Of a DNA stretch of 64,000 nucleotides, positions 24,833 through 42,373 are shown piece by piece; within the stretch, counting starts at the first letter, position 1; every line of letters starts with the position of its first letter. The notes beneath the pieces were generated by a model, which saw nothing but the letters and a program-made list of their open reading frames with translations, ran no database searches and had not been told where the DNA came from. The stretch is from contig OZ251241.1 in assembly GCA_965240325.2 (NCBI GenBank), positions 1,178,001 to 1,242,000 on the forward strand, given 5' to 3'. Position numbers and translations under genes: made by a program. The stretch is from Rebecca billardiae RCC1528 (Eukaryota > Protista > Haptophyta).

Positions 24833-26487
24833 TCAGCGACGCGCATCCGAGAACAGATCATGAGATCAGCAGTCATCAGACCGGTCACGGTGACGAATGT
24901 CTAGCAGTGTCAGTGATCATAGGGTCGTCCTCATCACTGGGATTCGTAATGGCAATGCGGCGGCGGTCTATCTGGCGGCCTTATTATAACGTGAGTAGCA
25001 GTCTTATCAGCAGCATATACCTCTGCTGCTCGATCTGCTGCTACAGCTTGCTGACTCTGACGCCTGCCCGTTGCATACCACGTCGTTAATATAATATATA
25101 TATTGTCTGAGTCAGATCAACCCCCGACATCGACTCTCACCGCTGCGCTATTTACTCTGAGGCACAGTGACTCTCTAGCTACAGCACTGCTGTATCATTG
25201 TATATAGATAGCGACAGTCACGGCGCTTACGTATTCGCAGTTCGCACCAAGAAACCCTTTGAATGACAAGCTCACCTCGAGACGTACTTTGGTCTGTTTT
25301 GACTTTTGTGGCGGTGTCTTTGTGCAGTGTTGGATGGCGTCAATCACGCCTTGGCTCCGGTCACTGTCCGGGACGTCCAGCAGGGGTGCATTCAGACTCT
25401 CTGGGGGGGTCTGGGGGGGGCTCCCCCCAGCCGATCGAAGGACCAAATACGCCTCAATAAGGCCCCAACTCGCCAGAATTCGCATAGCAGACCGTGTTCG
25501 CTGGTGTTGGCTGAGGGCTGCGTCGTGCGGCGTCGGCTCTGCGCCGGGCGGCCATGACGCATTGCACACAGCCCCAATATCGGCGCCTCCCTCGCGAGTC
25601 AAGACGTAGCGTAGTGCAGGATCGAGCAACGCATTGACCGCTGCGGCGCACCGCGCAGGCCACGCCGCACCTTAGCACTCGCGAACAAGCTCTGAGCCAG
25701 CCAGCTGTGGCAGTCCTCTGAGGAGCTGCAGCCAAGCACGAGCTCGTGCGCATACCCGTGGCACCACGAGCTGACGGCGCGGCCCGGGGCGCGAGCAGCT
25801 AGAAGCCGACAAGCTCATGCGCACGCCCGCACCGCCGCGAGATGTGGCCGCCGGCGCGAGCAGCTCGACGCGGAAAGCGCGCAGCTTGCTCGAGTCGACG
25901 AGCAGCTTCTCGCCCATCGGTGACTCTCAGTGCACGAAGGTGCACCCGGGGCGCGAGCGCGACAGGGTGCCGCGGCCAACCAGCGGATGCGCCCGGATCA
26001 AGGCCTCCAAGACGTCTCGTCTCCTCGCCCGCTCGGCGGCGCTCCATCGTGCGAGAGACCGGTCCGGGAGCCCAAAAAAAAGTTCAGCACGATGGAGTCC
26101 TCCGTGTTCGACTGTGACGACGCGTTCAAGGACAAGGAAACATACGAAATCGTCTGCGGCTTCGGTTTTGAACCTGCGGCTTCGTCCGCCGCCCCGGAGA
26201 CCTTTCGATTGGTACCCTCATCGCTCCCTGGCTCCCAGGGGTTCGTCTAAATGCACCCCCCCCATAGGGTCAGTGGACGTCCCTGACTGTGGCTGGAGCC
26301 CCTTACAGTTTAGGCGCAGGCAGGTGAGGGGCGCGTTGCCGCACCTCGTCGAGGCGGCCATTGCAGCAAGCGGCCGCCCCGCGCTCGGAGGCACGCGCTC
26401 GGGAGCGCGCTCTGACACCACACGGGGAGGGTGCTGCACCTGGATGTTGTATCCCAGCCCAGTAACCAAGTGTGCACGTTAAAACAT

Positions 26488-27157
26488 GGGAAAAGTTCAG
26501 AACCCCGCCGATTCGCGGCGGCTTGTGCAGAATCCCGCCAAATCGGCCAGAACCTCGCGAGGGGCTTTTCCGGACGCGATGTCCCCCAGAAGTCCGATTG
26601 TCGAACATTCGGGCAAGCCACGCGCACGAAGATACCGAACCCCGCGATTGCGCCGAAACGGCGCAATCGCGTCTTTTGACGTCGCCGATTACGCGCAGTA
26701 CCCGCGAAATGAACCCCGCCGGCGAAACACTTAATCAAACACGGGGTTCGCGTCGTTTCGACGCCCTCGCGTGCTGTTTCGGCCGCGGGGCCCCTCGCGG
26801 CTCTTCGGAGCCCGCAAAAAAGCCCCGAAGAGCCCCCATCGCCCCCACGCGCGCACCTCGCGCGAACGAGGTGCGCGCGCGCGCCCGACGCGCGCGCGCG
26901 CGCGCGCGTCGGGCTGCGGGCGGGGGGAGCGGGGGAGGCGCGCGATGCCGCCGCCTGCGCGCGCGCCGCCTCACGCGCGCGTGGCCTCCCGGCGCGCGCG
27001 CACGCGCTCTGTCCGCGTGCGCCTCCGTTGGTTTGCATAATGTGCACGCCCGCCTCCTGGCGAACTCGCGCGCGACGGCCGTGTGGCGCGCGCGCGCGCA
27101 GGCGGAGCTGGTTCGTGCGGCGTTACGCGCAAGCTACGTGCACAACATGCCGCCGCC
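26488..27157 (+). repeat. Left TIR of MULE (670 bp)
   Basis: Reverse complement of 41692..42361; the translations in the ORF track (26472+ and 41298-) are identical across it. Confidence 0.95.
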
Positions 27158-30100
27158 GCAGTCGATGCGGCCGCAGTCCAAAGAGGACTACTTCGCAGTC
27201 AAGTCGAACGTGCTCGTGCAGCGTGCGTCTGCTGATGGTGAGGGCATTCCAGCCACTGTCTTGTCGTGCGAGATCAAAGCAGTCCCCACGCGCGACGGCA
27301 AGCATCGCGCTTCTTACACGTACATCGTCGGGCCGCTACCCGACGTTGACGCGGAACAGTGGGCGCTCGCAGCTGGTACGATTCTATACCCCCAGATGGC
27401 AGCGAGTCAAAGGCGGGTGACGCCAGAGCAGCTCACGAAGCTGCCGCTCGCGACGGGCGTTGGCGCATCTGTGGCCACGCCCGGCGCGTCGCCGCAGCGG
27501 GCGGCGGCGCCGCAGCCCGGTTCGCAGGCGCCGTCACGCACGAGCGCACGACTTGCTAATGCAGGTGGCGGCGTCGCCGCTGGCGGCGGTGCTGGCAGTG
27601 GTGCAGCCCAGGGTGGCGGCGCAGGCGTGCGCAGCGGCCTGCGCGCAACGGAGACGTGCTGCGACGCCGCCGCCGCCACCACCGGTCGCGGCACCGGTGG
27701 TGCCGCCGGTGTCGCCACCGCCGGCTGCGGCGGTGGCGACACCGGCCGCTGCGACCCTGCCACCACTACATCCAAGGGGGGGAACCGTCGTGTCGGCGGC
27801 GGTGGCCGCCTCGCCGGCACCGCTGCTGCCGGCGCCGCCACCGTCACCGCCGCTGCCGCCACCGCCGCTGCCGCTGGCGGCAGCGGCGGTGACGGTGGCG
27901 GCGCCGGCAGCAGCGGTGTCGGCGGCGGTGGCCGCCCCGCCGGCAGCAGCGGTGTCGGCGGCGGTGGCCGCCCTGCCGGCACCGGTGGCCGCCCCGCCTG
28001 CAGCAGCGGTGCCGGCGGGGCGGCCACCGCGGCCGACACCGCTGCTGCCGCCGCCGCCGCCGCCGCCACCGGCGCCGGCGCCGGCGCCGGCGCCGCCGCG
28101 AGCGGTGGCGCCACCGTCCCCGCAGTCCCCCCCGCCGCCAGCGATGGGGCAGGCGGCGGCGGCGGCAGCGGCGGTGGGATCGGCGGCGGCGGCGGCGGCA
28201 GCGGCGGCGGCGGCAGCGGCGGTGTTCCTGGCGGCGGCGGCGGCGGCAGCAGCGCCGCTGCCGCCGCCGCCGCCGCTGACGCCGCCGGCGATGCCGGCGG
28301 CGTCACTACGGAGGAGATGATGGCGCGCGTGAGCCAGCACCTCACGCCGCCGCGCGCCGCCGCCGGTTCTACCTCTGTCTTGCGCGGTGCCGCGAAGCGG
28401 CAGTCGGTGCCGGCGCCGTCGCCACTCCCGTCGCCACTCGCCGTCTTCGTCACTCCGACCGCTTTGCACGCGTTCGACACGCGCGGATCCTCGGCGTTCA
28501 CGCAGCAGCCTCCTGTCGCGCGTCTGAAGCCGTCGCTCATGATCTTCATGGACAAGCACAGCGCGCAGCTGGGCGACGGGGCGCGGACAATAACGTCCCA
28601 AAACGCGGTCGGCCTGACTTCACGCACGGCGGTGGTCCGCCGTTACCACGCCGTGCTCACGTCGGTGGAGAGCGTGCGCGAACTCACCGAAGCCGGCGCC
28701 CTCCTGCCGGCCGCCGCCGTCGCGGCTGCGGTGCGCGCATCTTTCAGCGCCTGCTCCCCGCCGACACCACCGGCGCCGGGAGGCGCAGGTGCCGCGGACG
28801 CGGCCGCTGCCCTGCGCGCTGCGCGCGCTCACTTCGTGGAGTGCGCTGAGGAGGCTGAGGGGCGCCAGCTGTTGCCCTTGCCGTACGCCCCCGGCCCGCA
28901 CCTGGCCGTCACTGCGCCCCTGCCCGGCGCAGAGCGCCCGGCGGTCGTGCCGCGCGCGCAGCGCACATCGGCTGGGGGCAAGCCGCTGGCGCTCTTGTGG
29001 ACCGCAGCTGAGCACGCGGCGCTGGGCATCCCCGCCGACCTCGCCAACGTCCCGCGTGTGTGGCCCGCGCTGGTGCCCAAACCGGCGGCGTGCGGCGCGG
29101 CGCCGACGCCCTCGTCGGAACCCGCCGCGGCGTCGCCTCCGCTGCTGCTGCACGCCGTGGTGGCAGTGCGCGCTCGCCCGCGCGCTCGCCCGGCGCCGCA
29201 TGCCGGCGGCGATGGCGCCGACGCCAGCGATGGCGCAGCGGCGCGCCCGTCCGCGGAGGCGACGCTGCAGATGGCGTACGCCGTCCGGGACACGGACGGG
29301 TGGCGCGTGCTGCAGCAAGCCGAACTCGTCACCTCCTTGACGGCCGAGGTGACGCACTACGCGGACGCCGACTTCGGCACTGCCGTGAGCAGAGGCGACA
29401 TCGTCGCCGTGCAGCTGGCGTCCATGGCGCCGCCACCGCCGGATGAGCCCGCGTGCGCACGCGCGGCTGCGGGCGGCGCCGGCGGCGGCCCAGCCAGCCG
29501 CACTAGCGGCGCGCCGGTGCTCGACGCTGAGGACGAGGTGGCCAAAATCCCGTCGGGGATGCTCGCGGCGCCCGACATTCTGCTCACGGCGCAGGGCTGG
29601 ACGGCCCTCACCGGCGTCGCCGCTCCCACTACGTGGACGGACGCGGGCGCACCCAAGTCGCACCTGCAGCACGCTGCGTACATCGCAGAGGGCGTGCTCG
29701 CGTTCCTGGGGAGTCTCCGCGCGCACGCGCCCGATGCGCTGCCGCAGCTGTACCGCACGCCCGCCTCTGGCGACCTGCTGGATGTGCTGCGTGTGGTGTG
29801 TCTCGCCGGGAGGCCGCCCGAGTGCGCGCTCGAGGGCACGCCGATCGAACCCTGGCTCGATCTCGCTGAGCGCATGGGCACGTCCTTCGACTTCTCGCGC
29901 TTCGCCGGAAGCGACTCAGGCGACACCCTCGCGGCACTCGCGTGCCACGCGGAGGCTCTGAAACGCCGTGGGGCCGGGGCGACGTGCCTGGCAGCGGCGA
30001 TCGCGTGCGCCACGGTGCTGACGCAGCGCGTCTCCCTCCCTCACTTGCGCTACGACGCGCTGGCAGACGTCTACCAAACCTTGCGCGGGGACGAGTACTC

Positions 30101-31247
30101 GTTCCTCACCAAGGTCCGCGTCGCGCGCGCGCGCTTCGTGCTCCCGCCCCCCGACGGCGCCGACGGCGCGCGCGCCGACGCGACGTCGGGGGGCACCGCC
30201 AAGCAGCAGCAGAAGCAGTCCGCTGCGCCGTCAGCCGACGCGCGCATCCCGTACTTCGAGATCCAGGCAGTGTCCGAGGACTGCATCGCCCTGTACAACC
30301 AGGTGGAGGGGGCTGATGCGGGGTCGCAGTGGGCGCCCAACCCGGCGGACTTGCTCTCCTTCATGTTCGTGCCCGGAAACACGCACTCGTGGAGGTATGA
30401 GGAGATGAGAAACCGCAAGTCACAGAAGCGCACGCGCGGCGTGCCGAAGCCCGCGGGCAACTTCTGCACGCTCTTCTTCACAGTGTGCACGTACCCGCCC
30501 ATGCAGGGAGCTGGCGCGCCGCCCCCCACGGAGCGTGGCCTGAGGGACGAGACTGCCTCCATCACCGACTTCCGCGGGCTGTGCTTCACCATCATGCAGG
30601 ACGAGAAGCCGAGGGGCAATGACGTGCTGTGGACGCACCCGGCTGCCCCCGTGCAGTCCCGCGCTGCGGGCGGCGCCGAGGCGCCGAACGGCGCCGACGC
30701 GCCCAAGATGTACGCGGGGCGCCTGGACGTGCCGTGGCACCCCCCCGCGCCCGCGGACGCGCCCGCGGCTGCCGCCGCCACCGGAGCGCGCAAGCGGCGC
30801 GCTTCCACGCAACGGGCTGCCGCGCCCCCGGATGCCGCGACCACCCGCCCGCCCACCACGCGCGCGCCCGCCCGGGGCGCCGCGCCGGCCGGGGGGAAAG
30901 TCGCCAGACGTGGCGCTGCCCAGCCGCGCGCCTCGCAAGCCGACGTGCCCACCATCAACCTCGACGAGCACGGGCGCGGCGACGACGAGGTCGTCGAGGC
31001 TGTCGCGGCGCGCCTGTCGCGGATGATCGAACCCGTCGCGGCGCGCCTCGACGGCCTCGACGAGCGCACCGCCGGCATCGAAGAGCGCACCGCCGGCATC
31101 GAAGAGCGCACCGCAGCGGGCCAGCGCGAATTGGCCGTCATGCGCGCGCGGCAAGACGATCTCACACGCATGCTGGCACAGACCGGCACTGTCCTTGAGC
31201 GCTTGGTGGCAAGGACCGAGCCGCGCGAGGGCGCGAGCCGGCGCTGA
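27147..31247 (+). CDS. MULE accessory protein (~1,366 aa): N-terminal Tudor/SH3-like segment, Gly/Ala-rich linker, unknown globular regions, C-terminal coiled coil
   Basis: Uninterrupted ORF from the TIR-embedded ATG (MPPPQSM). FAVKSNVLVQR..IPATVLS..YTYIV..RRVTPEQLTKL resembles an SH3-barrel pattern; heptad repeat ERTAGIE near the C-terminus. An upstream start via TIR intron 26871..27101 is possible. Confidence 0.7.
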   Translation: MPPPQSMRPQSKEDYFAVKSNVLVQRASADGEGIPATVLSCEIKAVPTRDGKHRASYTYIVGPLPDVDAEQWALAAGTILYPQMAASQRRVTPEQLTKLPLATGVGASVATPGASPQRAAAPQPGSQAPSRTSARLANAGGGVAAGGGAGSGAAQGGGAGVRSGLRATETCCDAAAATTGRGTGGAAGVATAGCGGGDTGRCDPATTTSKGGNRRVGGGGRLAGTAAAGAATVTAAAATAAAAGGSGGDGGGAGSSGVGGGGRPAGSSGVGGGGRPAGTGGRPACSSGAGGAATAADTAAAAAAAAATGAGAGAGAAASGGATVPAVPPAASDGAGGGGGSGGGIGGGGGGSGGGGSGGVPGGGGGGSSAAAAAAAADAAGDAGGVTTEEMMARVSQHLTPPRAAAGSTSVLRGAAKRQSVPAPSPLPSPLAVFVTPTALHAFDTRGSSAFTQQPPVARLKPSLMIFMDKHSAQLGDGARTITSQNAVGLTSRTAVVRRYHAVLTSVESVRELTEAGALLPAAAVAAAVRASFSACSPPTPPAPGGAGAADAAAALRAARAHFVECAEEAEGRQLLPLPYAPGPHLAVTAPLPGAERPAVVPRAQRTSAGGKPLALLWTAAEHAALGIPADLANVPRVWPALVPKPAACGAAPTPSSEPAAASPPLLLHAVVAVRARPRARPAPHAGGDGADASDGAAARPSAEATLQMAYAVRDTDGWRVLQQAELVTSLTAEVTHYADADFGTAVSRGDIVAVQLASMAPPPPDEPACARAAAGGAGGGPASRTSGAPVLDAEDEVAKIPSGMLAAPDILLTAQGWTALTGVAAPTTWTDAGAPKSHLQHAAYIAEGVLAFLGSLRAHAPDALPQLYRTPASGDLLDVLRVVCLAGRPPECALEGTPIEPWLDLAERMGTSFDFSRFAGSDSGDTLAALACHAEALKRRGAGATCLAAAIACATVLTQRVSLPHLRYDALADVYQTLRGDEYSFLTKVRVARARFVLPPPDGADGARADATSGGTAKQQQKQSAAPSADARIPYFEIQAVSEDCIALYNQVEGADAGSQWAPNPADLLSFMFVPGNTHSWRYEEMRNRKSQKRTRGVPKPAGNFCTLFFTVCTYPPMQGAGAPPPTERGLRDETASITDFRGLCFTIMQDEKPRGNDVLWTHPAAPVQSRAAGGAEAPNGADAPKMYAGRLDVPWHPPAPADAPAAAAATGARKRRASTQRAAAPPDAATTRPPTTRAPARGAAPAGGKVARRGAAQPRASQADVPTINLDEHGRGDDEVVEAVAARLSRMIEPVAARLDGLDERTAGIEERTAGIEERTAAGQRELAVMRARQDDLTRMLAQTGTVLERLVARTEPREGASRR

Positions 31248-32044
31248 CCGTGCGAGCGACCGCTGGGCGGAGGCGGTGCGCCGAACGCACGTCGGCTGCG
31301 GTGCTGCCGAGGGCGCACACCGCCGCCAGCAGTGCGCCGCCGCCGTCGCTGCTCACGCGCTGGGCGCACGCGCCCGGGCCGGTGGGGCGGCGCGGCGGCG
31401 GCGTGCGCGCGCACCGCGCGCCCGGCCAGTGCGCGACACCGTGTCGCACTTACCCGTGCCCATCCATACTGGTGCGCGCCGCGCGACGGGCTTGCGCGTC
31501 TCCGGTGCGCGCGGCACCACGCCCGTGCACACCGCCTGACCCCCCGTTGCTCACCGGTGCCTGCGCGCCGACCCGGTGCACCGTCTGACTGCGCGCGCAT
31601 GCGCATGCGCAGTGACCTTGCCCTTGCCGTATTCCGCCATGCAGTTGCACCCGCAGTCCTTGGCCGACGGTGCTCAATCGGCCGGCTTCGTCCGAGTGCG
31701 CGTCGTCCGCACAGACAGTGCTTCCCGCCGCGAGTTGGCGTGTCACCTTCAGTGTCACCTGCCTAAGTAGGAGTACACAGCCGCTGGTGCCGCCGATGCG
31801 GAGCACCCTTATCACACAGCTCCCCGTGCCGTCTGAGCCTGAGGCAGCCCTGCACTTGTCCGCGGGCGACTCAGCCCCCGACCATCTGAAGCGGCACGAA
31901 TTATTCACCGAGCCCCCATCTATGCACCCATCGACATGCAGTCCCAGTCACGCACATCCCACATCTCTTCCCCCGCACGTGCCCAACTCCCCGTAACGTG
32001 CCCGTCTCCCACTGCGGGGCACGGACGCCACTTCATCCGCCAAT

Positions 32045-35000
32045 CTACTCGCCACTGCCGCCGTCGGCGCCCGCGGGCGCGTGCGCAGACGCGCGCCGGG
32101 CGCGCTCCCGCGACAAGCGCGCGAGCAAACGAGTGGCTGAGTGCTCCTCGTACCCGTCAAGGCGGGAGTCCAGTGCCGGCTGCGCGAGGACACGGTCGTC
32201 GTCCGCGCTGTCGTAGTCCATGGGCTCGCCTTCCGCGGGGTCCTCGGGGCCGGCGGGCGAGTGCAATGAGAACACCCGCGTGTTGAAGCGCCGCGTGGCG
32301 CCACGGTAGCGAGTGAGCCCGACCTCGTCCACGCGCGAGAGCAGCATGCGGTCGGCCATGTGTGGCGCCAGCGTGGGCTGATACTCCGACGCCCCGTTGT
32401 GGGTCTCGTCGTCCTCCACGAGCGCACGCCAGCGTGCACGCGCCTTCGCGCAGTGACGCTCCGCGCACGCCGCCACGTACGGCCAGCGCCCTTCGCCGCC
32501 CGCGGAGAGCGCGCGCGCGGCCGGCGCGGCGTCCGCGCCGGTATCCACCACCGCGTGGAAGTGCCCTGGGTGGTACACGACGGCCACCCAGTCAGTGCCC
32601 ATGGTGCCGAGGTCGAGCCTGCGCAACGCGTGCACGTCCTCCTTCTTCGTCAGGTCGAAGCTCCCCTCGGAGAAGCACCTCCGGCGTGTGGTGCTGTCCG
32701 CCGCCGCATCGCGCGCTCGCTTGGGCGCCCGCCACAACGACACCCGCGGGAACAGGTTCACCTTGTCTGCGTCCATACGATCGCCGCGCGCGGTGAACGC
32801 CAGGACGTGCACACCCAGCGCACGCGACGCGCTGCCCTGCGTCTGCGAGCCTGGCGTCCACTCGCCACCGCGGCGGAATTCCTCCCAGGCCGAGTCGTAG
32901 TCCGCGCCGCCACGGTACAAACGCGCGGCGTACCGCAGGCTGGTCCGGTTCGTGCCCGCCCATCGGCCCTCGAGCTCCATGTCCTGGCCCGTGCCGCGCT
33001 TGCGCAGCTCGTCGGCGCGCACGGCCAGGACGCCGGCGAGCTCACGCTCCGCAAGCTCGCCGTCCATGGGCTGCCCATCCCACATCGTCGGCCCGCACTC
33101 GTTGGGGCCGGTCGGGTGGAAGAACGACGCCATGTAGGACACCGTCGCGGAGCGCGCGCGCTTGGCGCGCACGTTCATGCGCTGCATAAGCGCGTTGCGC
33201 GCCGCGCGCGTGGGGGCCGCCGCGAGGGCGGCCGAATCGTGCGCAAGGATAGCGTGGAAGAAGCAGTCCCCGTCGCCGGGCACGTCCACCTCGCGCACCG
33301 TCGGGCCGAACAACGTCTTCAGCACGTAGGCCACGGTCGGGGCCCTGGACCCACCCCGACCGTCCCCGGCGAGCGACCACAATGGCAAGCCGGTGGCAGA
33401 CGTCGCCAGCAATGGCGCCTCACGCGCGCGCGCGCGGCTCGCGTCCCACCGCGCGAGTGGGAGGCCGAGCTCGGGCATGAGCTGGGCTGCGGCCGACGGC
33501 GGCTCGTGCGCGGCGGTGCCAGGCAACCCAGAGCCTTCGTCCGCCCCGGCCGGACCCGCCTCCGAGCGCCCCGGCCGCGCGCGCGCTGCGAACTGGGCGA
33601 TGATCTTGTCGGGAATGCTTCTGGCGGTCTTCCAGGCGGTGCGCAGTGTGTTGTCCAACGACGTGTGCGCGGGCGCCCGCTCGCGCGCACGCATGAAACG
33701 GTTGGCCGACGCCTCGCCCACGCCGGCGGCGCTCGTGACCACCCTCCTGACCGCGACGTGGCGGTCGCCGAGAGCGGCGTATGCCGCCTCAGCCTCCGCC
33801 ATGACGTTCGCCGCGCCGGGCGCTGGCGGGGCCACCCCTGGCGTGCCCGCGCAGGGGGGAGGGCCTGCACCGTCGCCGTCATCCGCGGGCGCCGTTGGCA
33901 CGGCACCCGGCGGTGGCACTGCACCGCCGCGCGCGTGAGCTGCGTCGGTGCCCGCGCCCGCCCCCGTCGAGGTGCGTGGCGGCGCGCCACGCGACGCCGG
34001 CGGCGCTGCGCCGAAGCGCACTGACGGGCCCGGTGGAGCCTGGGCCGCGTACGCCCGCGCGCTGTGTGGCTTCTTGCGCGGTTTGCGCGGCTGGCGGGCG
34101 GGCTTCGCGGGCGCATCACCCGCGCCGGCGGAGGCGTCAGGTGTGCGCGAGCCACCTGGCGCGCCAGAGGCGCGCGCGCCCCCGCCGCCGCACGCACCGT
34201 CGCCGCCGCCAGCGCGCGCACGGGGCGCGCCGGGCCCGCGCGCGTACGCCGCCTCCTGCGGCCTGGCACCCGTAGGCGGCGCCGCAGCCGGCGCGCCTTC
34301 CTCCTCGGCACGCCACGCGCGCAGCTTCTTCCACGCGCCGGCGACAAGGAGGAAGTAGCAGCACGTGCACATGTACAGCCCACTGTCCATCGGACCCAGA
34401 TGCCACACGTACTCGCATTGCGCGGGTGCGTGGATGAAGCACGCGCACCCCTGGCACGTTAGCCTGGGGTCCACCGGGGGCGCGCTGGCCGGCCACGCAG
34501 CGCCGAGGTCGTCGGCTTGCGGGTCGTAGCACGCGCAGCAGCGCAGCAGGGCCGCCGTCCTCGCGTCGAACGTGGACCAGGCGCGCAGCCGCTGGTTGAA
34601 CGTCTGAGGCGCGGCCACGGTCCCGCCCACGCGCACGTTGACGTTGCGCGTGCAGAGCACGTCCTGGAGCGCGATGCCGTACAGGTGCGACGGGAGTTCA
34701 CTGAGCACCTGCTCGAGCGTCGAGTTCGCCGCTTCGCGCACGCGCGCGGCGAAGCCGCCGTCGGCGGTCAAGGGCCGCACGTACGTTTGCGTCGAGCGCC
34801 CGATGGGCACTGAGTCGTACTCGGAGCGCGAGTGCGGCGCGCGGCGGGCGCGGCCTCCGCGCGGCCCTCGCTCCCAGAAGCTGGGCGCGCGGTCCGCGTT
34901 CGCCGGCCTGCCCGCGCGCGCGGGCATCGCCGGCACGGCGACGTACTCCGCCAAGAGCGATTGCAACTGCTGTGACGGTAGCAGAAGGGGCTGCACAGCG

Positions 35001-38000
35001 TCCTCGAGGCGCCGCGGCGGCGTGATGACGTCCAGCTTCGTGATGGACAGCACTGCGCCCGTCGGGGCTTGCGTGACGCCGAGCCCGACCTGCGCGTACC
35101 AAGTGGCGCTGCGCATGTCCTCGGGGAGGAGCGAGCACACCGGCTCGTTCACGCGGTTGCACACGAGGCAGAAGTGCAAGCACGGCAGGCGCTTGCGGCG
35201 AAGCAGCCCGCAGCACAGGAAGTTGTCGAGGTGCACAAAGCGCTCTTTGGACTGGTCCGTGGTGCTCAGCACGCGGTAGCAACCGGCGTGCTCGCCGTCG
35301 GCGACGAGGTTGCACTCGGCGCCGCCCATGGCGCGCGCGTCCTGCACTGCGCCGCGCACGTACGGCACGTGCCGCGGTGGCAGCCCGTGCAGGTCGCGAT
35401 CGGGGTCGGGGTTGAGGGCGTGGCGCACGGCCACGGCGCGGTGCGTGGCGAAGAGGCGGTAGAGGTTGTCGTGCAGGTCGAGCAGCATCCACACCGGGCC
35501 CTGCGACTTGCGCACAGGGAGCAGCCACTTCATGAACGACTCCGCGGGCGCGCCTGTGACGTAGCCGCGCATCCACACCGGCGCGAAGACAGGGAAGAGC
35601 TCGGCGCGCGGGATGAGATCGATGATGCGCTTGCCCGACTCGGGCATCTCCGCCCAGGCCCGGTCGAAGTCCTCGACGTACAACGCCTGGACGCACCGGT
35701 CGAAGACCTCCAGGATCTTGTTGACGTCGTTCGCCGTGTGCGCGTACCCCGTGATGAAGTTGTCCCGCTTGTGGAAGGTGCACAGGAACAGGTGCCTGCG
35801 GGGGCAGAGGAGCTTCCACGCGCCGCGCAGGCCCTTCTGCCCGTCGGAGATGGTGACGGAGTCGTCGACGTTCCACACGTCGTCACCGCCCAGCTCCTGC
35901 TTCAAGTAGCGCACGTGCGCGCACCACGAGTCTAGGCACTCGACGTCGACGATGTACGACACACAGAGCACGAACAGCTGCCCGTTGGCGTTCACTGCGA
36001 GCGTCACAAAGAGCATGCCTGTGACGCGCGCAGGTGGCACCGGCGGAGAAGGCCGGGGTGCGGGTGAATGTGCGTGCCAGGGCGGGTGTGCATGTGTGTG
36101 TGTGCGTGGGTGTGCGGCCTGCAGGACACGGAAGGGGGGAAGGGGGGAAGGGGGGGGGGTGGGGGTGGGGGGCGCACACCGGCACGCTTGCCACCGCCGC
36201 TCGCCGGCCTGTGCAGGTGGCACGCGTCGCTGAACACGGCGCGGTTGCCCTTGGCCAGGAAGTGCTCACGGTAGAGCTGCTTGGCCTGCTTGGGCACGTA
36301 GTGGAAGCCACCGACGGCCTTCTTCCCGCGCACCTCGTCAATGGCGCGCTTCACCGAGGGCTCCTCCGGGTCGAAGGGCCGCCTGGCGCCGAGCGGCACC
36401 GAGCGCTGGGCGCTGTCGTGCACACGGCGGAACATCGCGAGCACGTCGCTGTGCACTGTGTCCGCGGCGAAGACGATCGGCGCGACCGCGTTGCCCTCCG
36501 CCGAGAGCCCGGCGGTCACTGCCACCAGGTCGCGCGACATGGCGCTGTCGTCGCCGTAAATCTGCTCGCGCGCGACGGCGAGCGCCCTGCGCACGAGGCT
36601 CTCACCCACCTTCTCCGGGACGAGCGCGCGCGCGACGGCCTTGCTCTCCGTGACGCCGTACGCCAACTGCGCGTGCGTGGCGCCGCGCTCGCGCAAGCGC
36701 GCCCGCCAGTCGTGCTCGACTGCCTTGCCCAACTGCTTGGCGGAGTAGGGCCACACGCGCACTCGCGCCTTGGTCCGCGACCGACTCGGCGAGGTGACTG
36801 GGTTCGCGCGCGAGCCGGCGCCGCCGGCGTTGTTGTAACAGTCCGGGCTGTGTGCGGAGGATGCCTCCACGTACCACGCCGGTCGGCCCCACACGGCGTG
36901 ATCCGGCGCGGGGCCCACCTGCACACGGAACGCGCAGTTCGGCGTGGTGCACGTCACCCTCAGCTTGGAATGGTCCAGTTGGGCGGACGGCGGCATGATC
37001 CGCCGGTGCACGGCGCACTCCGCTGCGAGGGTGATGGCGTCCGCGAGGCGCTCGAAGCGCGTGCCGGGTCGCACGAGTGTGTCGCTCGCCAACGAGGAGT
37101 CACGGACCACCTCCGTGTGCGGGCGTGGCGGCCTCGAGCCCAACACCTTCCAGCCTTCCACGGGCGCGAGCGCATGGTGCTGCCCCGCTCTGGACTGCTT
37201 GGGCAGTGGGTGGTACTCGGCATCTCCGCCGTGGTGCTGTGGCAAGGGCTGGCCCTGCGCGCCTGCCGCGGCGCTTGCGCCTGGGACGGCCGTGCGCGTG
37301 GCGGGCGTAGGCTGCGCGCACGCGCCGGACGGGGGGCACGTCACAAGCGCCGCGAGCGGGTCGTGCGCAGTTGACGCACCGGCTGCGCCAGCGTGGGCGG
37401 AGCCCTCCCGAGCGTCGTCGGACACATCGTCGCGGTCGCCGCTGGGACAGAAGCGCGCGCTCTCGTCCTCACAGAGCATGAGTGGGTCGGTGGCCTCCCA
37501 CTCGTCGATCCGCGCGAGCGCGGCACTGCCGGCGTCCGGCTGCGAGATGACACCACTCACGGCCCCCGCGCCATCCTCGCTGAGGAGGAGCGTCTGCCAG
37601 TCCGCGCTCAGGACGAAAAGGGGTGCGTTGCCGCTCGCAGCTGCACGCGTGTGCGCCGAGCGACTGCGGCCGAGGTCCTGCACAACAGTGCCCACTGCCT
37701 TCGCAGCCTGCCGTTGTTCGTCGGTCGCCGTCGCCGCGTGAAAGTGGCCTCCGACATGAGCGGCCTGGCCGGGTCGGAATGCCAGCCTGAGCTCGTGTGG
37801 CGCCAAGTGCAGGGTACCATGTGGTGGCCGCGGCAGCGGCATGTCCGCGTTGTCCGTGCCAGGCCCACCGACGGCGCGAGCCTGGACGTTCGAGGCCAAA
37901 ACGCCCGCGAGCGCGCTCGGTCCGGCGCCGTCGACGCGCTCCTCGCCCAGGCGCACGGCGTTGCCGAGCACGCTCTGCGTCGGCGCGGCCGTGCAATGCG

Positions 38001-41000
38001 CAACCGCGGCGGCAGTGCCACCGGCGCCATGCGCGCCAGTCGCCTCGCCGCCGTCTGGCACATCGGCGCTGCCGGGGGACCCTTCGCGCAGCACGCGCGC
38101 ATTGGCGTGCGGACCACCTCCGCCGCCGCCGCCGCCGTCACAGCCCGTGGACGCCGGCGCGCCATGCACCGCCACGACGACACACGGGCTCGTGCAGGCG
38201 GCGGAGGCGTCCGCCTGCGTGCACAACAGCGGCGCCCGCGCAGCGGGAGGGGGGGCAGGCCAGGGGCAGACGGGTGGCGAGCTGCTGATGGCCCCCGGAG
38301 GACGTGGGCCGGCGTCGGCGCCTGGCGCGCGGCCGTCCACGCCGCGCGGCGTCGGTGTCCCCGGCCCTGCACGGACAGGGCCCGTGCCGTGCGACGTGTC
38401 GCGCTGCCCGTGCGGGCCCGCAGGTGGCGAGCGGGCTGCAGCTGTCAGCGACGCGTCGCCGTTGTCAGCACCGGGGAGCGCGAGCAGAAGCGCCGAGTGC
38501 GCCCATTGGCGCTGCGCGCGTTCTGGCGGCACATGCACGCACTGCGTCACGCCGCGCAAGAGCTCCTCGGGATCGGCCGTCGGCGCGTCGCCCAGCGCGT
38601 GTTGGACGCAGTCGGCCACGTACTGCTGGTGCTGGGGCGAGCCCATGTTGAATGCGGGGAATGCGCCCTGCGCGTCGCCAGGCGCGCCAGCGCGCAGCTT
38701 CCGGCTGTACAGGTGCCGCAAGCCCGATTCGAGCGTGAGGACGAAGCGATGGGGCGTGAGCGGCGCAGGCGCAGAGACGAGAGCTGCAGGCGAGGCTGCC
38801 GGCGCGGCCAGCACCATCGGGCTGCGGTGGCGGCCCGCCGCGCGCAGCGCGGCGGCGAGTTCGGGCGACCCGAACAAGAACACAGCCTTGATGACATCGC
38901 CGTCGAGAGTGTGCGCGCGCCGCGGCTTTTTCCCCGACATGTCGCTGTGCGCAGGGGCGGTCCCGCCCCGCGGCGCCTGCGCCGAGCGGTGGTACAGCAT
39001 GGACGGGAAGATGTGCACGGTGCCTGCCACGTCGCCGCCCTCCACGTCGCCGCCATGCAGCGGAGCGGCGACGGGGTGTCCGTCCGGGCCCGCGTCCAGG
39101 AGCTCGAGCGGGTAGGGGTTCCCCCCGTGAGGTGCGACGGCACGTGCACGACGAGCACGGCCGTCCAGACGTGGGGGTCGTGCACCATGTCGCTGTCCAC
39201 GTGCCAGCCGTATGTGGTGGCCTCGCCCGCTGCGGTCTGGCCATCGCTGGTTGCGCCCGCGTGCGCGTCCGCAGGCGACGGGCGCGCGAAGACGTGCCAC
39301 GCAGTGAGAACGGGGCTGGAGTGCTCCACGTCGAACACCGCCTCCATGAAGGCCTGCAGTGTAGTCACCACGTCCGCGAATGGTGGGCAGTCCAGCACCG
39401 CTGTCGGCGTGCCCGCCTCGGCGCCATGGTCGCCCACCCCCCAGCGGCGCTGCTCGGCGGCGACGCCGGCGGCATCGGCGGAGTGATAGGCGAGTGCAGT
39501 GCGGATGAGGGCATGGTCCGCAGCGTGGAGGGGCATGGAGGCGTCGCCCGCCTAACCTGGCGTGGACAAAGACGTAGTCGCGCAACGCCTGCACAGCGTG
39601 TGGTGGTATGCGAACGCTGTGGGCAGTGGCCGCAGCGTCGCCGAAGGCTCGGCGAAGCGCGTGCTGGACCGCCAAGTTGTGCACGAGCATGTCGCACAGG
39701 CTCAGGGACGACGCGGGGGTGTTCGGCGGGGCTTGGCGCGGTGGCGGTGCGCGCAGGGCCGGTGAGGGGTCCTGCGGCACCCCCGGCGGGCGAGGGCACC
39801 CCGCCGAAAGAGCGCCTGACACCGCGCTCACGGCTTCTCCGGACACGCGCGCGGCGGCGCCGGCGACGGCGTGCGCGCCGACCAGAGTCACCACCAGCGT
39901 CACCGGCGGCATCGCCACCGCTGCATCGGCCACCAAGGCTTCGGCGAACGTCGCGTCGAGGAACGGGTGCAGACGTGCGCCCACGCCGACGTGCACCAGT
40001 GCGGGCGTGAGCGGGATGACGACAGCCCACACAGTGCGACGCTCGAGGACGGAGATCGCGTGCAGCAACGGCCGCGCCAGCCAGCCCTCGCACAGCGCAC
40101 GCCCTTCGCACGCGTCGAGAAAGGCCGTCAGCCCAGCGCGGCCGTCGTCGCCGACGTCAGACACGGACGCGCGCAGCGCCCGCGCGGCAGCGACCCGCCG
40201 GTCGCAGTCTGCACCGTCTGCATCGTCGTGGACTGCGTGGCCGGCCGCACGGCGGCACTCGGCGTCAGCGCGCAGCGCTTGGTCCACAGCGCGCAACCAC
40301 GTGGCGCGCGCGCGCAGCAGTTCCCGCCAGAGCAGATCCGCCCGTTGGCCCGCCTGCACCGACGAAGACGTCTCCATGTAGAGCGCGTGGTCCGCAAGCG
40401 GCGGCGCGGGGGCCAGCGCCCCACGTAAGCTCGTGTACGCACGGGTACGCAGGTGGTCTGCCGCGTGCGCGTCGGACACGCCGGGGGCTGACGCCGACGC
40501 CACGCGCACAAAGGCGGCGAAGAGGTCTTCGCGGCATCCGGCGTCGGCGCCGAACACCGCGCGCGCGTAGTATTCCACGGCCGGCGCCGGCTTAGCCCCT
40601 GTGCCACCCGCTCGCGCATCCACAGTCGAGAACACGCCGTGTATGTCCCCCGCGTCCGGGCGGGGCGCGCACAGCGCAGCGAGCGCCACCTTCACCTGCA
40701 GAGGCGAGCTCGCCCATGCCGCACGCACCGCGATGGCAGCAGGGGCGCGAGGCAACGGCGGCGGCGACCCCTGCCGCCGCCGTTGCGCCGGCACACCCCA
40801 GCCCACAGAGCCCCCCCCCGAGTCCGAGGTCGGGTCGTGACCTAGCAACCCACCGCCGGCAGCGCCTCCGGCAGCGGCGCCGTGCGCATCGCCAGGCGGG
40901 GGCGACGACACCGGGTCACACCCAGCTGGGCACAGCGAGGTGGGCACCGGCAAGTGCTCGGCGCCGGGAGCGCCGGCGCAGCCGGCGCCATGCATCGCCG

Positions 41001-41702
41001 CAAACGCCAGGGCGCGGAACCACAGGGCAGCAGACGACAGCCTAGACAGCCTGTCGCAAGAGCCGCCCATGTCGCCGCCCAGGTCCAGTACAGCCTCGGC
41101 TGAGGCCAGCACACCGACGCACTCGGTGAAGCAGAGAAGCGCCTCCGCACTCGCCAGATCCGACACCACCGGCGGCACGCAGCCGGTGCCACCAACACGA
41201 CCACCAGCCTGGGCGGCGCTCACCGAGCCCAGCACGCACAGCACGAGGACCAAGCTGAACTCCCACGGGGTGTTCTGTGGAGTCATCCGCAGAGCATTCA
41301 GCGCGCTCTCCGCTCCGCTGACGAACTCGTCAATCCGCAACGCGCGCACAGTGGTGCCGTCGACGCGCCTGGGCTGCACCACGTCAGATGACGCCTCCGC
41401 CTGCGCGCGACAGATGCACGGTGCGCAACGGATGCACGATGGCGGGCAAAAGGGGCGGGGGGGGGGGGGGTGGGGGTGGGGGGCGCGGGGTGCGACGTTG
41501 GAGGCACCGGCACGCACGTCGGTGCAGGCAGTACCCTCTGCCAGCCGCCCGCGCGCAGCACCGCCACCCAGCCGCGCGCACCATCGTCCTTGCGTGCGCA
41601 GCAGTTCCGTCGTACAACCACCAAAGCGGGCAAAGGGCGACACCTGCGCGCGCGTCCGGAGGCCACGCGCGCGTGAGGCGGCGCGCGCGCAGGCGGCGGC
41701 AT
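32045..41702 (-). CDS. Giant MULE transposase polyprotein (~3,100 aa predicted): 2OG-Fe(II) dioxygenase, MuDR zinc-finger DBD, DDE, SWIM, PHD, HhH, OTU; exons 41702..41535, 41400..36180, 36018..32045
   Basis: DBD RVTCTTPNCAFRV..WYV..HSPDC. DDE: VFSDACHL..G|MLFVTLAVNANGQLF, TISDGQKGL, LCTFH, TGAPAESF. SWIM CCGL..LPCLH; PHD C4HC3; OTU VPGDGDCFFHAI..HFHAV. Introns 41401..41534 (phase 0) and 36019..36179 (phase 1) have GT..AG and restore frame. Core transposase is firm; the 5' exon model is less so. Confidence 0.85.
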
Positions 41703-42361
41703 GTTGTGCACGTAGCTTGCGCGTAACGCCGCACGAACCAGCTCCGCCTGCGCGCGCGCGCGCCACACGGCCGTCGCGCGCGAGTTCGCCAGGAGGCGGG
41801 CGTGCACATTATGCAAACCAACGGAGGCGCACGCGGACAGAGCGCGTGCGCGCGCGCCGGGAGGCCACGCGCGCGTGAGGCGGCGCGCGCGCAGGCGGCG
41901 GCATCGCGCGCCTCCCCCGCTCCCCCCGCCCGCAGCCCGACGCGCGCGCGCGCGCGCGCGTCGGGCGCGCGCGCGCACCTCGTTCGCGCGAGGTGCGCGC
42001 GTGGGGGCGATGGGGGCTCTTCGGGGCTTTTTTGCGGGCTCCGAAGAGCCGCGAGGGGCCCCGCGGCCGAAACAGCACGCGAGGGCGTCGAAACGACGCG
42101 AACCCCGTGTTTGATTAAGTGTTTCGCCGGCGGGGTTCATTTCGCGGGTACTGCGCGTAATCGGCGACGTCAAAAGACGCGATTGCGCCGTTTCGGCGCA
42201 ATCGCGGGGTTCGGTATCTTCGTGCGCGTGGCTTGCCCGAATGTTCGACAATCGGACTTCTGGGGGACATCGCGTCCGGAAAAGCCCCTCGCGAGGTTCT
42301 GGCCGATTTGGCGGGATTCTGCACAAGCCGCCGCGAATCGGCGGGGTTCTGAACTTTTCCC
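41692..42361 (-). repeat. Right TIR of MULE (670 bp)
   Basis: Reverse complement of 26488..27157. Confidence 0.95.
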
Positions 42362-42373
42362 TTAAAACATCTA

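Follow-up and report, generated by a model that had tools for sequence, protein, structure and literature searches.

The window, i.e. the whole stretch of 64,000 nucleotides that was analysed (Rebecca billardiae RCC1528, contig OZ251241.1, positions 1,178,001 to 1,242,000), contains a complete giant Mutator-like element (MULE) with a transposase gene on the minus strand. In the long N-terminal extension of this transposase there is a conserved block of sequence which, in what we consider the likely overall explanation, is a diverged domain of the 2OG-FeII_Oxy_3 branch (PF13640) of the Fe(II)- and 2-oxoglutarate (2OG)-dependent oxygenases, present here as a slightly damaged copy. It is probable that the block is a highly diverged prolyl-hydroxylase-like Fe(II)/2OG domain, encoded in the same exon as the start of the transposase, and that it is not of the TET/JBP, AlkB, or JmjC type. 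Support for the fold and for the family branch is indirect.

Motifs and reading frames of the candidate domain

The candidate domain is at 38872..39609 on the minus strand, as defined by the positions of its motifs, the copies of the element, and the alignment with a second element family, and it is broken in the window copy. On this strand it consists, in order, of an N-terminal helix (IPPHAVQALRDY, 39574-39609), the strand LTAWHVF, an H-x-D motif within YGWHVDSD (39189-39212, with H at 39201-39203 and D at 39195-39197), WTAVLVV (39147-39167), GGNPYPLELL (39097-39126), a segment from GTVHIF to YHRS (GTVHIFPSMLYHRS, 38983-39024) that carries the distal His (38989-38991), a 24-residue loop, and the last strand VIKAVFLF (38872-38895), with a Lys at 38887-38889. 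A preliminary description, made from the sequence alone, had reported these motifs in this order; each was found where it had been placed, on the minus strand, and is conserved in the second family. The same description had read them as one domain and, although the motifs are real, they do not share a single reading frame in the window, where two deletions split them.

Two frames are involved: that of an open reading frame (ORF) of 1,920 codons (36004-41766), which takes in the helix and all of the domain from GGNPY to its last strand, and that of a 329-codon ORF (38547-39536), in which LTAWHVF, H-x-D, and WTAVLVV are read. In the intact copies of the element, on contigs C27 and C13, the entire domain lies in a single open frame (3,254 codons in C27 and 2,046 in C13). 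A DNA alignment of the three copies places the differences: the window copy is without 5 bp at ~39546, between short CGGG repeats, and without 1 bp of a G7 run at ~39120. Relative to the C27 copy, these are the only frameshifting differences in the N-terminal ORF. From the three-copy alignment, the list of differences, and the list of ORFs, a stretch of ~143 codons between the two sites (39120..39546, minus strand) is out of frame; the misreading is Arg-rich and free of stop codons, and with it the H-x-D motif is lost, as are three core strands. Since the two deletions sum to 6 bp, the downstream transposase frame is restored.

If correctly assembled, the window copy would therefore be a natural allele in which a dead oxygenase domain is combined with an open, full-length transposase frame. 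Were both deletions errors of the assembly, the window copy would be intact as well. The loss of one base from a G7 homopolymer is a classic long-read error, and the restoration of the frame by the two deletions together is also in keeping with this explanation. However, the 5-bp loss between direct CGGG repeats fits replication slippage and is not a typical sequencing error, and there are further real-looking indels, of 2, 3, and 21 bp, between the copies. It is doubtful, on balance, that both deletions are artefacts.

The same block recurs in the second Mutator family, which is the larger one and whose open frame is of 1,790 codons. At least 10 copies of this family are identical over the domain, from which it follows that the family has been active very recently; examples of these copies are at C22:975383-976225 and C1:2963918-2964760. 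Between the two families the block is 48 % identical, the H, the D, the distal His, and the Lys are invariant, and the spacing from His to Lys is equal. Identity across the domain region is 42-66 % when taken in 50-residue steps, that of the N-terminal extension is 41 % over ~1,080 residues, and that of the transposase core is 63 %. The ratio of nonsynonymous to synonymous substitution (dN/dS) across the domain is ~0.46 and the GC content at third codon positions (GC3) is 0.86. Based on the conservation in the second family, the dN/dS ratio, and the GC3, the sequences indicate that the block is coding and has evolved with some constraint in two lineages that were active recently.

That the domain comes from a recently captured host prolyl-4-hydroxylase (P4H) gene, in the manner of a Pack-MULE, was considered and rejected, because a search of the genome with a profile of the domain at E 1 returned element copies only. 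Just upstream of the domain, a separate block at ~39860-40160 (minus strand; residues 551-650 of the first family) is the most conserved part of the N-terminal extension, with 64-82 % identity between the families. It exceeds the oxygenase-like block in conservation and matches no known family.

Probable assignment to an oxygenase branch

The genome searched was the organism's own eukaryotic assembly, of 72 Mb in 41 contigs. The PF13640 profile found at least 54 host places in it, none of which is inside the elements. Likewise, the AlkB-type model (PF13532) found 13 places and the JmjC model (PF02373) found 18, again with none inside the elements, and the Tet_JBP model (PF12851) had no match in the whole host genome at E 0.1. 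Domains of the prolyl-hydroxylase type are numerous in the host, but there is no match to Tet_JBP.

Language-model features from ESM-Atlas point to the PF13640 branch for both families. The domain of the first family reached a score of 0.94, its top clusters bearing the names 2OG-Fe(II) oxygenase or P4H (PF13640), and the core of the second family reached 0.91, with 24 out of 30 matches in the PF13640 set; TET/JBP proteins were absent from the matches of the domain. For comparison with the host's own enzymes, a profile was built from 35 of the host PF13640 places. In HMMER, the core of the first family aligned with this profile from the H-x-D to the distal His, with an E value of 0.0027 for one sequence, and the scores were reached by 16 in 1000 shuffled sequences for the first family and by 44 in 1000 for the second. 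With hhalign, the match to the 35 domains extended over 77 columns in the expected register (P 0.0077), and one in 300 column permutations of the query scored as high (real score 20.2; null 11.3 ± 2.3). An earlier hhalign and hidden Markov model comparison with only 15 host sequences had given a weak match, of 24 columns (P 0.045). MAFFT, unaided, put the triad residues (H, D, and H) of the two families into the sole three columns that are invariant in an alignment of 37 sequences.

The H-x-D...H triad has the order and spacing of this branch, with 71 residues between H-x-D and His in the element and 50-115 (median 68) in the host domains. The Lys in the last strand was noted in the preliminary description as standing where Arg normally binds 2OG. 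A Lys is not in itself odd there, as the residue at the 2OG-binding position is Lys in 20 out of 35 host domains and Arg in 13; it is the distance of the Lys from the distal His that is odd. A conserved Arg at +7 after the distal His is an alternative candidate for the 2OG ligand.

When AlphaFold was given a mixed alignment of element and host PF13640 sequences, it returned a jelly-roll with a predicted local distance difference test score (pLDDT) of 73.6 and a predicted template modelling score (pTM) of 0.69. The VIKAVFLF strand has a pLDDT of ~86 in this model, though there are no host rows in its columns. The structures closest to the model are the P4H of P. putida, PiuC, and PHD2 (Z 7.5-7.8, template modelling score (TM) 0.4-0.5), all of them 2OG oxygenases. 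The model is compatible with an oxygenase fold, and is not proof of one.

Several results weigh against the assignment. The Lys of the element is at +34 from the distal His, with a 24-residue insertion between them, as against +9-14 in the host enzymes, and the GG before strand V is missing in the second family. No Pfam match was found for either family, with the whole domain or the core, even at E 10, which includes the PF13640 profile itself, and PHROGs gave no relevant match, even at E 10. Two profiles run against PDB sequences found no relative, the sole match being a chance one to a dUTPase (E 0.21). An exhaustive HMMER search of 1.84 billion protein representatives at E 0.001 and a word-index protein search at E 10 each returned 0 matches. 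AlphaFold, given the alignment of the two element families alone, failed (pLDDT 38), and the Foldseek matches of that model are meaningless. The supporting results have limits of their own: the language-model matches may partly mirror the same short motifs; the profile statistics are nominally significant for one pre-named family and are far under the standards of a database search; the mixed-alignment model is partly circular, having genuine oxygenases in its input and the fold partly built in; and values of Z <8 and TM ~0.4-0.5 are within the range that the tool gives for unrelated models. For the frame-corrected domain, whose fold had been suggested as a check, there was no match to a curated profile or PDB sequence, and structural matches to 2OG oxygenases were obtained for the host-seeded model only.

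It is in the light of these results that a chance resemblance has to be weighed, in which the block would be a conserved non-oxygenase part of the N-terminal extension, with some other fold or partly disordered. Blank results from all of the standard homology searches, the failure of the unbiased AlphaFold run, pairwise statistics in the range P 0.003-0.04, and a middling structural Z all speak for such a block. However, only a single family, named in advance, was put to the comparison, three methods agree on both register and family, and the four key residues have stayed invariant between families that have otherwise diverged to 48 % identity. Chance resemblance is therefore considered unlikely.

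It could also be proposed that the domain is a real 2OG oxygenase which acts on nucleic acid, for example by oxidising methylated bases of the element's own DNA, and which would erase silencing marks, as a functional counterpart of the TET/JBP enzymes that fungal transposons carry. There is precedent for this in transposon-borne TET/JBP dioxygenases (PMC12730594), the domain is fused to a DNA-binding and DNA-cutting protein, and, among the nearest language-model clusters, many consist of proteins from phages and giant viruses whose substrates are unknown. However, the domain shows no TET/JBP or AlkB sequence feature, the AlkB R-x5-R being absent from it, and the scans described above found no Tet_JBP domain in the genome and no AlkB-type domain in the elements. 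In addition, the named look-alikes all belong to PF13640 and the structural matches are protein hydroxylases. Action on nucleic acid is, on this evidence, distinctly improbable. JmjC domains have a Lys ~15 residues after the H-x-D/E, unlike the element domain, in which none of the 20 residues that follow H-x-D is basic. All of the indirect evidence, from ESM-Atlas, HMMER, hhalign, MAFFT, and the genome scans, agrees with the preliminary description in placing the domain closer to 2OG-FeII_Oxy_3 than to AlkB or TET/JBP, and a prolyl-hydroxylase-like domain is the assignment followed below.

The transposase gene and the Mutator element

On the minus strand of the window, the ORF at 36004-41766 overlaps a second one at 32045-36223. 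The first large exon of the transposase is placed at 36180..41295 (minus strand), within the open frame of the first ORF, and this stretch is also open in the C27 and C13 copies and in the second family. The exon contains the conserved N-terminal extension (~1,500 residues) with the oxygenase-like block, a variable linker, a zinc-finger-like part, and the first portion of the MULE catalytic domain. The zinc-finger-like DNA-binding motif, LRVTCTTPNCAF, is at 36928-36963 and FSDACHL, of the catalytic domain, is at 36214-36234, both on the minus strand. The first in-frame ATG, at ~41284-41286, is the putative start codon, and the gene would have no introns other than the one described below. As the anatomy is read here, the oxygenase-like block, the zinc-finger-like part, and the first catalytic segment form one large exon. 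The block shares its long open frame and exon with the N-terminal part of the transposase, and its earlier description as being inside the transposase gene is therefore justified on anatomical grounds.

A putative intron (GTGTGC...CACAG; 36017..36179, minus strand), recognised by reading the sequence, splits the MULE catalytic domain. It is full of poly-C and CA microsatellites and differs in length between copies. A 2-bp GT indel at 36160, inside the putative intron, separates the window copy from the C27 copy, and due to this indel the window has two overlapping ORFs where C27 is open over 3,254 codons without a break. Splicing of 36017-36179 is predicted, because splice signals are present and because removal of the putative intron rejoins the two parts of a MULE motif, ...KRAG and MLFVTLAVN. 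The second exon or exons, at 32045..36016 (minus strand), would encode what remains of the MULE DDE domain, a Cys-rich finger, a SWIM-like finger (CLHFCLV, 35162-35182, minus strand), and, towards the C-terminus, a motif like that of OTU proteases (DGDCFFHAI, 33248-33274, minus strand), the SWIM-like and OTU-like motifs having been read by eye. The Pfam MULE match to the transposase, on which the DDE assignment is based, is weak (E 0.008-0.015) and is under the gathering score; for OTU and SWIM, Pfam reported nothing at E 0.1 in the transposase frame.

The element as a whole is 15.9 kb in length and occupies 26488..42361 (minus strand), as delimited by blastn alignment with two further copies of the first family in the host genome, those of contigs C27 and C13, which are 99.6-99.7 % identical to the window copy across exactly this interval. 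At the ends of the element are terminal inverted repeats of ~670 bp, the left at 26488..27157 (plus strand), which matches the right end in reverse orientation with 99.7-99.9 % identity, and the right at 41692..42361 (minus strand), with the terminal bases GGGAAAAGTTCAG. The window element is flanked by a 9-bp target-site duplication, TTAAAACAT, at 26479-26487 and 42362-42370, and the insertion on C27 has a 9-bp duplication of its own, TATATAATA. The features by which MULE/MuDR elements are recognised, namely long inverted repeats, a target-site duplication of 9-11 bp, and a MULE DDE transposase, are all found here, with 9-bp duplications at two independent insertions. Because of its 670-bp inverted repeats, its 9-bp duplication, and the presence of three copies at 99.6 % identity, the element is a complete young MULE with the classic Mutator-type structure.

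Along the full length of the element there are 35 differences between the window copy and that on C27, made up of 25 substitutions and 10 indels, and this share of indels (10/35) is high for copies that are 99.6 % identical. Insertions of in-frame size in the window copy relative to C27 are of 21, 3, 3, and 3 bp, at 31072, 28049, 31902, and 41459, respectively. This piece of the genome is very GC-rich, with a GC content of 0.51-0.78 in 2-kb steps.

Possible function and comparison with known systems

In the intact copies (C27, C13, and all of those in the second family), Fe(II) would be bound by the H-x-D together with the distal His in YHRS, and 2OG, through its C5 carboxylate, by the Lys of the last strand or else by the conserved Arg seven residues past the His. 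As in the closest relatives of the domain, the reaction may be the hydroxylation of a protein side chain. The target could be the transposase itself, or a chromatin or silencing protein of the host, and the DNA-binding parts of the transposase would bring the domain to DNA or chromatin. Hydroxylation might then aid transposition or escape from silencing. Taken further, an active giant Mutator lineage may have recruited a hydroxylase of the P4H/PHD type and fused it to its transposase, perhaps together with the OTU-like protease, either to modify chromatin or silencing proteins of the host or to link transposition to oxygen and 2OG status; this fuller scenario is put forward tentatively, and is rather unlikely to be right in its entirety.

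To our knowledge, the sole oxygenases so far known as transposon cargo are the TET/JBP enzymes in fungi. Were the fuller scenario true, the domain would be the first oxygenase other than TET to be described as cargo of a DNA transposon, and the window copy a natural allele in which it is dead. With a prolyl-hydroxylase-type domain fused to a Mutator transposase, the picture of such cargo would be widened to protein hydroxylation and to algae, with two diverged, recently active families keeping the domain. Transposons that have their own chromatin- or DNA-modifying enzymes reveal how mobile DNA counters host silencing, and this genome supplies both intact and naturally broken copies for comparison. 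A literature search, of incomplete coverage, found no Mutator element with a cargo of the oxygenase or prolyl-hydroxylase type.

Among known enzymes, the candidate domain is most like those of the prolyl-4-hydroxylase type in PF13640 (algal and bacterial P4H, PHD2/EGLN, and PiuC). It shares with them the order of motifs, namely the initial strand, the H-x-D, the T-containing strand, the GG, the G-x-x-x-F, the H, and, though farther from the H than in the host enzymes, a basic residue in the last strand, which is Lys as in most of the host members, and its best language-model, profile, and structural matches are all in this group. It differs from them in falling below every curated threshold, in the 24-residue insertion before the Lys strand, and in a Gly/Ala-rich insertion before the H-x-D. 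In addition, it is fused to a transposase, whereas P4Hs are free or secretory-pathway enzymes.

Fungal DNA transposons, of the Kyakuja-Dileera-Zisupton and other groups, have genes for TET/JBP dioxygenases as cargo (PMC12730594). The parallel is that a 2OG/Fe(II) dioxygenase, here a candidate one, is carried by a cut-and-paste DNA transposon, is kept in active copies, and has a plausible anti-silencing role. The fungal enzymes are from another branch of the superfamily, however, and are encoded by neighbouring genes, whereas the present case is an in-frame fusion in a Mutator element of a GC-rich, alga-like host. Accessory proteins with anti-silencing or chromatin roles are also cited for Mutator elements themselves, namely VANC of the VANDAL elements and the SET-domain genes in oomycete MuDR (cited in PMC12730594). 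Although VANC is not an enzyme of the oxygenase fold and SET is a methyltransferase, these are likewise cases in which a Mutator element has a function beyond that of its transposase, possibly aimed at the chromatin control of its host.

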